DNA of 61,398 nucleotides, the filler included, from Choristocarpus tenellus KU-1152 (lineage: Eukaryota; Protista; Phaeophyceae), in NCBI GenBank assembly GCA_964200185.2. It is 15 parts of 15 records of this genome, joined end to end, with 100 filler letters (N's around TTAATTAATTAA, not from the genome) between each part and the next. Parts side by side here need not be neighbours in the genome. Positions count along the whole stretch, not along the records: positions 39,653 to 42,641 come from CAXNAD020023108.1; 14 more parts are not named here. One strand, given 5' to 3'. Positions 39,229 to 44,989 of the stretch are shown here, one piece after another. How positions within the stretch are numbered: position 1 is the stretch's first letter; each line of letters starts with the position of its first letter. Below the pieces are notes generated by a model that was given only the letters and a program-made list of their open reading frames with translations, was not told the DNA's origin and searched no databases. The position numbers and the translations under genes are program-made.

Positions 39229-40839
39229 GTCTTTCCTTCCCTCAATCTACACTGACTCTTTCTGCGCGCGATTTAATTAGCAACATGACTCACGCGCGCC
39301 TAACATATATTTATTTGGATATGTGATGGAGGTAGGCGATGACGGTACACGAGACAGGCAAGGGCAAGGACCGAATATAAGTGGAAGGATTAACCCAGCT
39401 CCAGGAATAGATACCCAGGTCTCGATTTCGAAGAATGGAGAAGGATGGATAGAGAACGGAATAGGCCCACATGGGGATGAGGTGGAGGCGATCAAGGATG
39501 GGAATGGAGGCTCATGAGACAGGCGCGGGCAAGGGGGGAACATAAGCAGAGTNNNNNNNNNNNNNNNNNNNNNNNNNNNNNNNNNNNNNNNNNNNNTTAA
39601 TTAATTAANNNNNNNNNNNNNNNNNNNNNNNNNNNNNNNNNNNNNNNNNNNNCAGTGGTGTCTGCATTTCCTAATCTAACTCCACCGATGGTGTCTATAG
39701 TGTACCAGCAGCACTATCTACGAACAGGAGACTGCGCCGTCACCATCTTCAAGGCCTGCACCCACTTCGATGGATTCGTCGGACGCTTCCTTGCCACCTA
39801 TCACCATGCAGGTTTTGCCTGTACCGAGTGCTGACTTTCAGTTCCCGTCTCTGCTCTAGATTTAGTATGCGAGACAGCACTCGAGCCTTCGTCGCTAGAG
39901 GAAGTCCCGCCTTTTTGTTCAGCTAGGGGTGTTGACGACCCCGACCCCGAGCCTTCATCGCTCGAGGGAGCCATATCATTGCGCCCTGTCAGAAGATGAT
40001 GCTTGACTTCTATAAGGGAATACTGCCAAAGAGAATTAAGGTGGTAAAAATGCCTACGTAGCTCAGGGGCAGGACCCGAGCGCCTAATTTATTTAATATG
40101 CCCAGCTACGGCTGTTGACGCTCAGGCACCCGAGGCTTCGTTGTTCAAGGAATCCACAGTCTCGCCTCCGTTGTTGCCACCTTATTTGACGGCCGCCCAG
40201 CTGGAGACGTGGCTTCGCGATCAGCGCGCTGCAACACTCCAGACTGTGGAGACGAGGCACGGATCGAGGCCCGTTTGGAGGCTCGCCAGCACTACAAATA
40301 GACTTTTTTCAGAACTTCGTGCCGAAGTTTCCGGCCTCACGGGCTCGGCCTCTTCACCGCCTAGTGTCGGACCCTCTGTCCTCCCATGTCACGGACTCAC
40401 AAAGTCAAACCGACGACGACGAAGTCTTAACGCAATACTAATAGGAAAAAACAATTCAAACTTCACACTTGTTTCTTATTTTACTGTAATAGTTCCAATT
40501 CACCATCACTCCAAATACCATAAGCGACTTTGCCCCCACAAATCCCCTCAATAAATGAGGATGACTTCATAAATATTATTATTCTTCTCTTTGATTTCAT
40601 CCAATGGAAAAAGGAGGGAATGTTCTGGTATCGTACGAAGAACGGCCTATATATTCGAAAAATATAGATGATCACCATTTTTTAACCCATGGTCTACCTC
40701 TGTTCCAGAAACTCCTCTAAGACATACAAGGACAACAATAAATACGAGAATAGCAACGATATTAAACCATCCCAAACAATTTCCTCCTCTACAGTAAGGG
40801 TTCTTTCAACCTGATGATAATACCATTACCTCGGAGAAG

Positions 40840-42200
40840 ATGGGGAATGTGAACGCAGTGCCAGTTATTTCCCAAGTCAAATCTGCAGTCCAGGCGATCA
40901 GTGGTGACACCAAGGGAGCCCAAGAAACTCAGAAACAGTTCTCGTAACGGAGCCCCGTGGTCTTGCAGGTGTGTTCCGCCGTGGAAGTGACCTACGATAC
41001 GGATGCCGCACGTCGCACGCAGCTGTCATTCTTGGACAACCTGGAGAGCGTAGCAGACGGTACTCCCGTTGTGGGGCACATGAAGGGCGTTGTTCACATT
41101 CTCACGAACGACAAAGAGAAAGGAGTAGCCTGCATGAAAGAGGCCTCTCGAACCACGGCAGTTGTTGCGGCAAGTGTGGCTACTGGAGGCACGGGTTTTG
41201 CAGCAGCGGCTGCAGCCGGAGTCACGGCCGGATTGTTGGCCGATCTTACCACCACAGGCATAGACTCGACTGTGCACAATGAGTACAGGCCCAATGGGGT
41301 GTTGGTACTGGTGAGTGTTTTGTTAGCGTGCATATACTTGGCAGTGACCGCGTCTGCTTGAACATTCCATAATTGTACCCAAGCCCTTCACCGAATTTTC
41401 TGTAGCGAATAAATATAGTTTTGAGTGTTAGGACCCAGTTCAATCAAATTCACCACTACGATGTCAACTCGTTTGTTGGCACTCTTTTGCGCCTTTAATA
41501 CCCATCTTTCTCTCCGACTCTCTTCATGCCCTCCTCTCCTGAGTCGTGTCCCCACTCTCCACCCTCGGGTCCTCTGGTGCAGGGAGAGAAGGCCGCCAAG
41601 TCAGGCAAGGCGGGTGAGTACTTCGATCTGATGGCGACCCCAATAATGGACAGTCTGACGGCTAAGGGCGCTGCAAAGACGGCCAAGACAACTTCTGCGG
41701 CAAAGACAACAATCAACAGAATAGACGGTGCCAAGCAGTTGGTTCAGCACCTTCCTGAGGGTACGGTGCTCACCAAAATGTATGGTGAAAATGGAAACAT
41801 CACCACTGGGGTGCAGTCCACATCCAGGCAGGTTTTGATGAGACAGCAATTCGACCTCACAAGAAGGCAAGCGAAGCAGCACTCCAAGAATATGCCGTCT
41901 GCATTACGCGAGTTGCATCCCAACCCCCCACTTCCTCGGCTGGGTGGCGTGTGTGCCGAGCACCATGCCTTCAACCACCTGGCGAGGGTCAATGACGTAC
42001 CTGGTCAGACCTACACAGTGACAAAAGGGAGAAATGGGAAAGTCAGTACCATGAGGCGCTGTGAAAATTGCCGCGGGTACGGTACTTACATGGGCGCAGT
42101 GATGACAGACGGAGCTTTTCCGAGAGTTACAGCAGTGGCATCAGCAATACCTTGGGCAGCTGGGACGACAATGATCGCCAGTAGAAAAGGCGAGGAGGAG
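40840..42200 (+). CDS. Polymorphic-toxin-like protein with C-terminal zinc-dependent deaminase-like domain; one in-frame TAA (possible pseudogene)
   Basis: Exon 1 is 40840-41310 (GTGAGT donor). Exon 2 is 41583-42200 (TGCAG acceptor, GTGAGT donor; or reads through to the stop at 42275). Both junctions are phase 0. Motifs: three PV(I/V)xx(V/M)xxxV repeats, Gly/Ala hydrophobic tract, GVCAEHHAF (41952) and RRCENC (42060). TAA at 40945-40947. Confidence 0.72.
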
Positions 42201-44989
42201 GTGAGTATCCCTTGGGTAGGCTGCGTGGTATTCCTTTTCAGATATGTTTACAATTTGTACCTGCTGGATTGCTGACCAGTGTCGGATGTCAGTGATGATT
42301 GTTAAAAGTGTACCCTCCAGCCCTTCCTTGGTGTGAGCACAAGTAGTTTGAGATTGCCCCTACAAAACCCCAGCAATATTTAGACTTTAAACATCTACTG
42401 AAGTGCTTGTAACCCATGTTGGTAAGTTATGGCTGAGGTGCTGGTAACATATAGGATGTGTTGTGTCACCGAAATGGTTGAGCATGTCAACTCGGCCACA
42501 GCACATTACAGTGCAATGCTTCAGTGGAGCCTCTTACTTAGTGGACCACCCCCCACCCCCCTCCCTTGCCTGCAGTTTAGGCTAGGGTCTCAAGGATAGG
42601 GTTAGAGTTAATGCTAGAGCCCCTTCCCTGCCAAGCCACTCNNNNNNNNNNNNNNNNNNNNNNNNNNNNNNNNNNNNNNNNNNNNTTAATTAATTAANNN
42701 NNNNNNNNNNNNNNNNNNNNNNNNNNNNNNNNNNNNNNNNNCACGGTATAACGTTATATGGCATACGAGCAATACGGTATAATAACAGACAAACATGCTT
42801 TCCACAGTTTTAATAAATACAAAATATTTCCTGTACTACTACTACTATACTTACTAATAATAATAATGCTGCTTCTACTACTACTACTATGGTGTATCCT
42901 TGTTGAGAGACGATACAAGAAACACACGAAGGCTTGGTTTTATACTGGTCCGAGGTGTTTATCCTGAAAGTGCAACTTTGGAGTTCGCAAGAAACTTACT
43001 CATAGCCTCAGGTTTGATCCATTCGAAACACAAGGGGTAGTAGGTGTATGCTATATATATTACACATAGTACATGCTACTTACTATACAACTACTCTCTG
43101 TGCACTCTCTCTTAAAATATGATACCTTCTGTCGCCCATCCAAGTTGTGGTCCATGTTCACTTCTCTGATTCCATTGCCATTTTATGAGGTGCAGTGAAC
43201 TCCCACATCTACCTGCATGGTACACTGCCACATATGGACAGAAACCATGGATGAAGTCCACGTCCACCTTAAGGAGTCTTCATACTTATATAGCAGCCTT
43301 GATACTCTTGTATGCCGTACTGTTGAAGGTAGTCAGCCATGCCTCAATCCGATCCCTGAAAATCGAAAACACTCTTCTTCTTTTGAGAGAGATCTCCATG
43401 CGAGACAATTCCCTGACTGAGTATCAACTCGTAACAAAATCAAAAAGAAATATGTTGAAGGATTGAGCAATTCCAGTTATTGAAATATCATCTTTGCTAC
43501 CTGCTGGCATTCTAAGCCAGGCATACTTTTGTGGTGTCACACCCACCCTTGTCACCATCCGGCTGGCGAGGGCTAGTGCCTTATGTAAAATTTCATACAT
43601 TACATTACACCAACCAATTTTTTATATTATGTTGTGAAGCGCTAGACGCTTCTGCATCTGGGATCACGGTGGAGTCAGTCAATATAACGTTCACATACAG
43701 ATCAGGAGAGCTTTGGGGGAGGGGGGGGAATTTCAAAAATTAGCAAGTGATTTGTGTAACTGCACACCACATGAGAGAGAGTGAAATGGCATTACCAGTG
43801 CAGGTGGCTGCATTGCAAAAGCGTTGCATATCATGAATGAACAGAAAACCCAATACCATGACAAATTATTTACTCCAGATTACTTTGGAAGGGTTCCATG
43901 TGTACCACAGATGGTGGAGAACAAGTTCATCCAAACAGGAATCCAAACACGACAGAAAATATTAGCAAGAAAAATCCTTAACTCCAGAAATTGCACACGG
44001 CATTCCTCGCCTAATGGGCGGTCTGGAGATGAGGTGGGGTGGACGTCATTGTCTCCATATCTATACCAGTTTCCAAAGCCCCTTGCTAGACAAGACCAAA
44101 GGTTTTCAGGGAGTTTGTTGCGAAAACTAAGCATTAGATCCACCCTCTCACAGAGAAAATGGAAAATGATCCCATCAACTTTTTCAAGCATAACAATTGG
44201 TTGAAAACAATGCATTGAGATTACAAGGTCACACAAGGTCTGTAAGGGCACGAGGTGGCCATACTCACACGTGCAAGAGTGTATAACACTGCCGCACGCA
44301 AACTTCAACATAGAGAAAAAATATAATAGGGGAAGATCTAATCGGTACTAGCGACTCTGAGCTGAGCCACCTTCTAGGTGTGATACTACAGTTTTAACTG
44401 ATTGTGTGCCTGCAAATTGATAATTCCACAATGGATTATCGAAAGAAAAATATCTCTGCTTATTTCATCATCCGTTAAGAATATATACGAGTATATAACA
44501 TGGCACATTGCACTCAAAAAGTGGAGCAAAGCACACATTTGCCCTTGGTTTAATTAGTTTGATATTATACCTCTTTCTGTGAATTCTTCCTGCTCCTCCC
44601 ATTTATTGAATTATTCTTGACAGGCCATTTTCCTAATAAAATTAGACAAATATACTTTGTCCAGAATACCCAAAACTACAGTGAGGATGTATCCTGTCAT
44701 GGCGCACCTTTGATGAATAGTATTGATTGGGTACTCTAACCACAAACACGGGTACATTGTTGGGGGTCCATTCAGTTTTCTAACCTGGTCTAAGCCCTCA
44801 TGGACAAATGATTCGTAAAAAGTACTCCGGACTATGTTGTTGTGTACCCTACTTCGGTCTCCTACGTGTGACAATCCGAGGACTCCAGCGATTTCCGTTT
44901 CATTCACTTCCATAAACTAATAAGTTACTGGAACACATAGTTCCTAGGACCGTTACTGTACTTATTAATACTATGTATTGTTTATTAGT

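Follow-up and report, generated by a model that had tools for sequence, protein, structure and literature searches.

Toxin-type deaminases have moved repeatedly from bacteria into eukaryotes and have become editors and immune mutators there, as in AID/APOBEC and DYW. Here, we investigated a gene of Choristocarpus tenellus KU-1152 (Phaeophyceae; GenBank assembly GCA_964200185.2) that joins a helical carrier domain with a glycine zipper to a C-terminal domain predicted to have a deaminase fold. The gene lies in a window of 61,398 nucleotides, filler included, which is the whole stretch of DNA that was analyzed and is composed of parts of 15 records of this genome. All coordinates below count along this window. 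The piece under study, positions 39653–42641, comes from CAXNAD020023108.1 and is about 3 kb long. A previous reading of the DNA, called the sequence-only reading below, had proposed that a eukaryotic carrier is fused here to a toxin deaminase with swappable C-termini.

The closest described systems are bacterial. Hallmarks of the YwqJ clade of deaminases include a Gx[CH]xE motif in helix 2, an insert between strand 3 and the CxxC motif, and frequent truncation after helix 3 or strand 4 (Iyer 2011, PMC3239186, Table 1). YwqJ of Bacillus subtilis consists of an LXG domain, then PT-TG, then the PF14431 deaminase domain, and is delivered by the LXG/type VIIb secretion system (T7SSb) (Oliver et al. 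2026 preprint, PMC13648612). Its cytidine deaminase activity on single-stranded DNA (ssDNA) depends on Glu and shows no flanking-base preference, and the protein has “two additional central helices” (PMC13648612). Such toxins follow the logic of polymorphic toxins in general, in which heads that can be exchanged at the C-terminus come after a constant N-terminal region and a short, conserved pre-toxin linker (Zhang et al. 2012, PMC3482391). In animals, the AID/APOBEC-like and secreted SNAD deaminases are thought to derive from bacterial toxins and have proposed immune roles (Krishnan et al. 2018, PMC5889660). Neither YwqJ-type deaminases nor the principle of polymorphic toxins is new in itself. 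Eukaryotic members of the YwqJ clade were reported in 2011 from basidiomycete fungi only (PMC3239186), and these are also the only ones in the literature that we searched. No description of the animal family presented here, or of its carrier, was found in that literature; the library is incomplete, and hence this is no proof of novelty.

A spliced, transcribed gene and its damaged copy

We aligned contigs from three public runs of one study (X1, X2, and X3) to the window. An X3 contig of 1242 nucleotides (nt), at a depth of 636, contains the exact spliced form of the gene, joining 41309/10 to 41582/3 with GT..AG ends. The two exons and phase-0 joint of the sequence-only reading hold at their coordinates. 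The gene model is as follows.

40715–40839, plus strand: minimum 5' untranslated region, from the start of the spliced X3 contig
40840–41310, plus strand: coding part of exon 1, 157 codons, N-terminal carrier domain (translation; family N-domain profile)
41311–41582, plus strand: intron 1, 272 nt, GT..AG, phase 0 (joint in the X3 contig; intron present in the X1 and X2 contigs)
41583–42200, plus strand: exon 2, 206 codons, linker, deaminase domain, and hydrophobic tail (translation; 0 differences to the X3 transcript contig)
42201–42641, plus strand: start of intron 2, with a GTGAGT donor at 42201 (the X3 contig leaves the window at 42200)

The ATG at 40840 opens MGNVNAV, with A at -3 and G at +4, and the nearest in-frame stop upstream is 45 nt away at 40795. 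Intron 1 has a GTGAGT donor after 41310 and a CAG acceptor at 41580–41582, and its position coincides with the boundary between the carrier domain and the linker with its head. X3 has zero depth inside this intron; the X1 and X2 contigs contain it. Beyond 42200, the X3 contig extends for 28 letters that occur nowhere in the window. The gene thus continues into at least one further exon outside the piece, and a gene model ending at 42200, as previously drawn, falls short. Owing to the X3 contig, the splice, its phase, the start region, and the second intron are observed rather than predicted. A eukaryotic gene, transcribed and spliceosomal, occupies the locus and encodes a protein of two modules. 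The joined X3 form could in principle be a processed DNA copy; this is unlikely, as X3 is without any unspliced form.

The copy of the gene in the window is interrupted near its start.

40945–40947, plus strand: in-frame TAA at codon 36, between helical repeats 1 and 2, specific to the window's copy

The previous reading had reported this stop. It is present in the window, but all three runs (X1, X2, and X3) have a sense codon at 40945. We then compared codon effects with the stop site excluded. In exon 1, besides the stop, the runs differ from the window at seven positions, one silent and six missense (codons 37, 38, 42, 45, 50, and 112). At all six missense codons, the allele of the runs matches the family consensus or restores a glycine of the zipper, and the window's allele does not. 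The window's exon 2 has an open frame without a single difference to the X3 contig, and every conserved residue is retained in it. With a stop and six missense changes in exon 1 next to an exon 2 identical to X3, the window's copy is an allele or paralogue that has been damaged and is decaying in its N-terminal module, and an intact version is expressed in the species.

X1 and X2 also contain a second version over 41468–41921, covering the end of the intron and the start of exon 2. It is ~7% diverged (21–30 differences), and its small gaps (3 and 1 nt, at 41764/41769) disrupt the reading frame of exon 2. This version is either an allele or a paralogue that has diverged and may be broken too. 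The locus is polymorphic or multi-copy, with more than one broken version.

These lesions bear on whether the gene is simply a dead pseudogene with no present function in the organism. The stop, the missense changes at positions where the runs fit the consensus, and the frame-breaking gaps of the diverged copy would all be expected of one. Nevertheless, we consider a dead gene improbable, given the sense codon in three runs, the high depth of the spliced X3 contig, and the exon 2 that is open with its conserved residues all kept. At most the allele is dead, not the gene.

All fixed coding differences between the window and the three runs are confined to 40945–41173 (230 nt of exon 1). This mosaic of exon 1 differences and an identical exon 2 suggests recombination or gene conversion between versions. 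Two other candidates were rejected. The first was a mini-intron around the stop (40944–40968, 25 nt, GT..AG), whose removal shifts the frame into nonsense and where the X3 contig is unspliced. The second was a deaminase-type mutation signature in the window's allele; of the four T-for-C differences in this tiny sample, three fall where the other allele has a CpG and are ordinary CpG decay.

Some further observations concern the flanks of the gene. A separate X3 contig of 566 nt covers 42286–42641 in the presumed intron 2 at a depth of 64, versus 636 for the spliced contig; possible sources are a retained intron, a transcript of unrelated origin, and a repeat. The region also has a C-rich tract at 42546–42565. 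Upstream of the gene is a degenerate direct repeat (39882–40156) with units of 23 nt (at 39882, 39948, and 40131) and 54 nt (at 39920 and 40103) that are 72–87% alike. On the minus strand, the repeat reads as a 57-codon open reading frame (ORF) rich in Ser, Asp, Glu, and Gly (39801–39974), which may be coding, a low-complexity exon of a neighbor, or a decayed repeat.

The C-terminal domain and its predicted active-site residues

Exon 1 and exon 2 were searched and folded separately, not as a joined protein; we concatenated the exons, with an X at the stop, solely for residue numbering and for a hydropathy scan. The search that opened the family was an exhaustive phmmer search of 1.84 billion representatives, which returned 15 relatives. 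Six of these have 49–63% identity, including P0004, a full-length protein of 354 residues with an MGN start and no stop. A follow-up profile search gave a family set of 134 proteins, and residue conservation was counted over 47 distinct C-terminal domains (46 at some columns). Nothing new came from exon 2 alone, or from an alignment of the C-domain only, in a homologue search limited by a length window and a word index, so that these blanks mean little. No RNA family was matched in Rfam.

The features of exon 2 are given below; residue numbers in this section are those of exon 2.

41670–42110, plus strand: deaminase-fold domain, residues ~30–176 (AlphaFold 2 model, Foldseek, VIA-align)
41952–41963, plus strand: CAEH at the start of helix 2, with predicted zinc ligand Cys124, predicted catalytic Glu126, and His127 (conservation, model)
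42057–42071, plus strand: RCENC at the start of helix 3, with predicted zinc ligands Cys160 and Cys163 (conservation, model)
42090–42110, plus strand: MGAVMTD, strand 4, the last conserved motif (conservation and model confidence end after it)
42123–42182, plus strand: second, weaker hydrophobic stretch of Gly/Ala type past the domain (Kyte-Doolittle mean 1.0–1.24)

The AlphaFold 2 (AF2) model of exon 2, built on a 16-sequence alignment, has a predicted local distance difference test score (pLDDT) of 87–96 over residues 40–175. Both ends are disordered, with pLDDT below 50 from residue 180. The order of elements is a 26-residue helix, two strands, three inserted helices, the CAEH helix (125–135), a long strand (140–148), a small hairpin insert, the CxxC helix (161–164), and a final short strand. 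It contains the succession helix 1, strands 1–2, helix 2, strand 3, helix 3, strand 4 that characterizes the three-layer alpha/beta fold of zinc-dependent deaminases. A Foldseek search of the PDB finds blasticidin S deaminase as the best match (E 1.7e-4, probability 1.0), and blasticidin S or cytidine deaminases fill every one of the top 49 listed rows. VIA-align, which is independent of Foldseek and compared 48,161 chains, agrees: blasticidin S deaminase scores Z 9.8 and cytidine deaminase Z 8.5, above the tool's background of Z 7–8, and rows 1–22 are all deaminase-fold enzymes, including dCMP, guanine, and tRNA deaminases. A cytidine deaminase toxin from a type VI secretion system (T6SS) appears at Z 5.6. 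Based on this model, exon 2 very likely adopts the deaminase fold, as the sequence-only reading had proposed. Sequence searches of the exons against Pfam, NCBIfam, and the PDB, along with a PDB profile search, returned solely chance-level helical rows, such as Sec2.

The predicted active site is strongly conserved. The CAEH columns are kept as C 47/47, A 46/47, E 46/47, and H 44/47; the RCxNC columns as R 46/46, C 46/46, N 43/46, and C 46/46; and in MGAVMTD, M and G are found in 45/46 and D in 46/46. Together, C124, A125, E126, H127, A129, R159, C160, N162, C163, M170, G171, and D176 are kept in 43–47 of 46–47 relatives, with Gly76 and Arg82 likewise conserved. CAE (124–126) and CENC (160–163) are 36 residues apart, within the spacing of ~25–40 residues that marks zinc-dependent deaminases. 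The conservation of the C/E/C/C residues (46–47 of the 47 distinct homologues) bears out the earlier assignment. The earlier list of elements, namely an MGN start, three repeats, a Gly/Ala tract, a K/A/T-rich linker, and CAEH...RCENC...MGAVMTD, is likewise all in the sequence, and since these elements are conserved in relatives, they are far beyond chance. An intact zinc/Glu site in the modeled domain is well supported. Some relatives also carry Gly/Ala-rich stretches after the deaminase domain.

Inactive deaminase-fold domains are common, ADAT3 and the APOBEC pseudo-domains among them. The domain could accordingly be a pseudo-enzyme that has kept the fold and zinc site as a non-catalytic module for binding nucleic acid or protein. 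One relative, P0006, has lost the Glu, and other members of the YwqJ family showed no activity in earlier screens. However, Glu126 in 46/47, His127 in 44/47, and retention of all three Cys form the pattern of an active site under selection, and the sole exception, P0006, is a fragment that looks to be decaying. We regard a pseudo-enzyme as quite unlikely, and intact copies of the protein are probably active enzymes.

The window protein itself shows all four of the features that mark the YwqJ clade in the 2011 description, two of which include a Gly and a His that most of the family lacks: a GVCAE motif, a three-helix insert with His112, an insert at 149–159, and an end of conservation at Asp176. 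Where the window has GVCAE, close kin have GACAE or GPCAE, and Gly122 is found in just 8/47 family-wide. The helical insert before the CAEH helix comprises three helices over residues 79–111 and agrees with the additional central helices of B. subtilis YwqJ. His112 of the window is a His in 11/47, and the adjacent Pro113 is the conserved residue of the insert end (41/46). Between strand 140–148 and C160, the strand 3/CxxC insert at residues 149–159 contains a short extra strand (154–156). The domain is truncated after strand 4, where MG.V.TD (170–176) is the last conserved motif. The family resembles the YwqJ clade (PF14431) in its [CH]xE motif, long N-terminal helix, extra helices between strand 2 and the catalytic helix, strand 3/CxxC insert, and truncation after strand 4. 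In both, the domain also closes a modular protein and is preceded by a constant N-terminal region and a short linker of TG type. Unlike the YwqJ clade, the family has no Pfam match and a eukaryotic host with introns. It also lacks LXG, RHS, or another secretion domain, PT-TG is undetected by Pfam, and no adjacent immunity gene is known. Its carrier is a helical and glycine-zipper domain that occurs eukaryote-wide and often has a start of the myristoylation type.

Predicted structures point the same way. We searched the ESM Atlas with residues 235–385 of P0039, a homologue from Lottia, rather than with the window protein itself. The nearest predicted structures to this homologue are bacterial clusters of PF14431 YwqJ-deaminase and RHS-YwqJ proteins (TM 0.58/0.68). 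Structure rows 1, 3, 5, and 8 carry PF14431 with TM scores of 0.56–0.61 by query. When ranked by features, a PF14431 cluster is at rank 2 with a score of 0.93 and 190 shared features. A sequence bridge from the family to bacterial YwqJ proteins was attempted and failed. The label “YwqJ-like”, as used in the sequence-only reading, is supported by clade-specific structural features and by the nearest predicted structures of the Lottia homologue, but PF14431 itself never matches. The domain is probably closest to the YwqJ clade and is at least a divergent sister of it. The UniRef entry of a Huso huso homologue is named “YwqJ-like deaminase”, a label given by the source, and this name shows that automatic annotation has reached the family.

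The best solved matches (PDB 3oj6, 2z3j, and 3b8f) have a Cys-x-Glu plus CxxC zinc site of the same type as the window domain. These blasticidin S and tetrameric cytidine deaminases could indicate that the domain acts on small molecules, such as free cytidine, deoxycytidine, or a blasticidin S-like antibiotic. Its role would then be salvage or detoxification, and its resemblance to toxins would reflect shared ancestry. The two best structural matches and the common CxE motif type favor this possibility, yet the PDB is without any YwqJ-clade structure. Identity to these enzymes is 14–17%, and they lack the helical insert, the long N-terminal helix, and the carrier. They are soluble homotetramers that act on free nucleosides and keep a complete C-terminal hairpin; our model is without the full strand-4/strand-5 hairpin core of cytidine deaminases and has the YwqJ-type inserts. 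Furthermore, the predicted structures closest to the Lottia homologue are clusters of YwqJ and RHS toxins. One would not expect to find a housekeeping enzyme behind a glycine-zipper carrier that elsewhere bears a Scabin-like ADP-ribosyltransferase, nor patchily in animals or as stop-bearing, diverged copies. A small-molecule deaminase is thus an improbable reading of the domain.

The AID/APOBEC-like and SNAD proteins resemble the family in being animal deaminases of presumed toxin origin. They differ in belonging to the helix-4 division, in having HxE rather than CAE, and in having no glycine-zipper carrier. AID/APOBEC structures are absent among the matches listed by VIA-align.

The carrier domain and its exchangeable heads

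Exon 1 encodes three helical repeats followed by a hydrophobic tract, and a linker follows at the start of exon 2.

40858–40941, plus strand: helical repeat 1 (PVISQ...QFS) (family consensus; hairpin in a homologue model)
40954–41043, plus strand: helical repeat 2 (PVVLQ...) (family consensus; homologue model)
41065–41157, plus strand: helical repeat 3 (PVVGH...ASRTT), the best conserved part of the N-domain (family consensus; homologue model)
41158–41241, plus strand: Gly/Ala hydrophobic tract (glycine zipper), ~28 residues (Kyte-Doolittle 19-residue mean peaks at 1.2–1.5)
41248–41298, plus strand: conserved N-domain end (TTGIDS..H.EYRP.G) (family consensus)
41616–41669, plus strand: conserved linker motif (FD..P..D..[TG]), common to family members whatever the C-terminal head

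The family consensus has three units of ~33 residues. The first two read PV.SQ.KS.VQ...GD.EGA..TQ..F and the third reads PVVGH.KG..HY..GD..GG..AMK.ASR. In repeat 3, the residues P, G, H, K, G, H, Y, G, M, K, S, and R are nearly invariant. The best model, from a short family member with 77 aligned sequences, is all-helical, with three hairpins and a long helix over the glycine zipper (mean pLDDT 82.6). For the N-domain, the ESM Atlas gave no more than leads, all below 0.9; these are glycine-zipper proteins, with PT-TG at a score of 0.82 and rank 26. Pfam glycine-zipper families match weakly but recurrently: C19orf12 in 21/34 members, Microcin V in 13/34, and DUF456 in 7/34. The tract resembles C19orf12-type proteins and the glycine-zipper translocation motifs of T6SS effectors (PMC10240207) in having a Gly-x-x-x-Gly-rich, moderately hydrophobic stretch; however, all of these matches are below the Pfam cutoff, and the resemblance may be compositional only.

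Among the 96 complete N-termini, 41 start with MG, and 38 of these 41 have Ser at position 6. An MG start with Ser at position 6 is the established consensus pattern for N-myristoylation. The N-termini without MG begin with MDA, MADW, or MDW. Reasoning from these features, we think it fairly likely that the carrier associates with a membrane.

The N-domain profile matched 131 proteins, of which 49 carry the deaminase. We cut tails 50 residues after the N-domain to drop the shared linker. About 90 proteins have the carrier with other tails or none, and the tails fall into ~25 unrelated groups. The family does not share one invariant C-terminus. Most of the tails belong to no known family, and those that Pfam identifies are the following.

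Scabin-like ADP-ribosyltransferase head: Pfam 29.1 bits, cutoff 27
VPS9 and A20 finger (zf-A20) head: recognized by Pfam
RING finger head: recognized by Pfam
ZZ/C1 fingers head: recognized by Pfam
HicA-toxin head: weak Pfam match

Both the fusion and the swapping of C-termini in the earlier proposal are supported by these results; a dedicated toxin carrier is not, given the VPS9, RING, and ZZ/C1 partners. We also searched 78 members for Pfam families of secretion and trafficking (LXG, RHS, PAAR, haemagglutinin repeats, PT-TG, and others) and found none. Next to the Lottia and ENA homologues lie ordinary genes of no relation, or short ORFs. In view of the ordinary signaling heads, the missing secretion domain, and the lack of a visible immunity partner, the front part seems to be a general carrier or adaptor of membrane type and not a device dedicated to the delivery of toxins. 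The family is like bacterial polymorphic toxins in that it takes heads from the same pool (deaminase, Scabin/pierisin-type ADP-ribosyltransferase, HicA-like RNase) behind a constant front and a conserved linker. It is unlike them in being eukaryotic, with no secretion-system domain and no immunity genes or cassette arrays shown, and in having ordinary eukaryotic signaling modules (VPS9, RING, ZZ) as some of its heads.

The carrier with the deaminase was found in oyster, limpet, sturgeon, a teleost, a flatworm, and bdelloid rotifers. The carrier alone or with other heads comes from nematodes, a sponge, krill, a mite, a glomeromycete fungus, and others. Three homologues are intronless single ORFs: one of Lottia gigantea (L003, KB201656.1, 6001–7254), one on a 362-kb ENA contig (L002, 6001–7257), and one on a Logan contig (L001, 606–1670). 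The Lottia gene is flanked by genes for ribosomal L27A, a C1 peptidase, and an ammonium transporter. With no introns in the Lottia and ENA homologues, a phase-0 intron between the two modules is not general, and exon shuffling at their boundary is rejected as the general mechanism of swapping.

This distribution also bears on contamination, meaning a bacterial sequence or a recent, unexpressed horizontal transfer that was mis-assembled into a eukaryotic contig. The nearest relatives of the head by predicted structure are indeed bacterial toxins. Against this stand two GT..AG-type introns, one splice of which is directly seen, an N-domain found in molluscs, fish, flatworms, rotifers, nematodes, sponges, and arthropods, and a Lottia homologue that sits between ordinary animal genes. 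In addition, a metagenome scan with exon 2 found no relative. Contamination is practically refuted by the X3 contig, and we give it next to no weight.

Several family members have unusual architectures. P0014 (337 residues, Logan) is a relative of the deaminase with a hydrophobic, signal-peptide-like start and no carrier, so that the same head may exist in a secreted form. P0025 and P0027 (553 residues, ENA) combine the carrier with the deaminase, and the first half of the deaminase recurs as a partial second copy near the C-terminus, at residues ~483–544. P0095 of Dermatophagoides farinae (379 residues) has two carrier domains in tandem and no recognizable head. A Cys-Ala-Glu motif, GGRCAER, is also present in the largest non-YwqJ tail group (P0063, P0069, P0079, P0080, P0090, and kin), which has no Pfam match and might be a further deaminase-like head that has diverged. 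Some ENA contigs hold at least two family members, namely P0040 with P0043, P0041 with P0046, and P0079 with P0135.

Proposed mechanism and significance

We propose that the all-helical module of exon 1 most likely holds the protein on a membrane or inserts into one. Its start is of the MG...S/A myristoylation type, also present in ~40% of relatives, and is followed by the hairpin repeats and the glycine zipper. The FD..P..D..TG-type linker would then join this carrier to the head. In the head, Cys124, Cys160, and Cys163 would hold zinc, and Glu126 would shuttle a proton. By analogy with B. subtilis YwqJ, the likeliest substrate would be cytosine in ssDNA or another nucleic acid. Our overall reading, which we favor with some reserve, is a membrane-held protein whose C-terminal domain deaminates such a substrate and has a role in conflict. 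Taken separately, a nucleic-acid substrate is reasonably likely, and a role in conflict is an evenly balanced call. Across the family, one constant carrier or adaptor of membrane type would be combined with effector heads that can be exchanged. Heads of the deaminase, ADP-ribosyltransferase, and RNase-like kinds would most plausibly serve biological conflict, such as immunity against intracellular invaders, cell death, or attack on other organisms.

A number of observations weigh against this proposal. The first concern the head. The domain is not tied to any family of deaminases by a sequence method (at E up to 10, searches of Pfam, NCBIfam, and PDB sequences are blank), and PF14431 in particular has no match at E up to 10 for exon 2 or 44 relatives. 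HMMER filters discard most matches above E 0.1, and a very weak match could be missed. The top solved matches are deaminases of free nucleosides or antibiotics, with DddA-type toxins at just Z 3.3–3.7 in VIA-align. Neither the Gly of Gx[CH]xE nor the His of the strand-2/helix-2 insert is conserved family-wide. Others concern the carrier: four of the five AF2 models of the N-domain are of low confidence, there is no solved relative of the N-domain (a fold search gave weak rows similar to tetratricopeptide repeats, with E >0.1 and TM ~0.18), and the hydrophobicity of the tract (Kyte-Doolittle ~1.5) is below that of a classic transmembrane helix. Finally, the window's copy cannot make the full protein. 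There is no convincing second gene in the ~3-kb piece, which is too short to look for an immunity-like partner, and several partner heads (VPS9, RING) are ordinary signaling modules, which weakens a purely “toxin” reading.

On a broader and more tentative view, which we hold as possible though somewhat less likely than its opposite, animals and some other eukaryotes would own a polymorphic-effector system. An often myristoylated glycine-zipper carrier would dock on or cross a membrane. It would be recombined with toxin heads from the bacterial pool, namely a YwqJ-type DNA deaminase, a Scabin/pierisin-type DNA ADP-ribosyltransferase, and a HicA-like RNase, and it would serve as an innate-immune, cell-death, or inter-organism weapon.

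The gene described here is spliced and expressed and encodes a putative YwqJ-like deaminase on a shared membrane-type carrier, with a predicted active site conserved across molluscs, fish, flatworms, and rotifers. As a new animal mutator of DNA or RNA, or as an immune effector, it is a candidate that can be tested. The carrier domain is now defined, and its many heads can be used for function prediction by association. The deaminases are compact, at ~140 residues, and may be of practical use given that B. subtilis YwqJ has no sequence-context preference on ssDNA (PMC13648612). If the polymorphic-effector reading is true, the family's deaminase-headed branch would join AID/APOBEC and ADAR/ADAT as a third, independent line of nucleic-acid mutators in animals, and might supply new base-editing enzymes.

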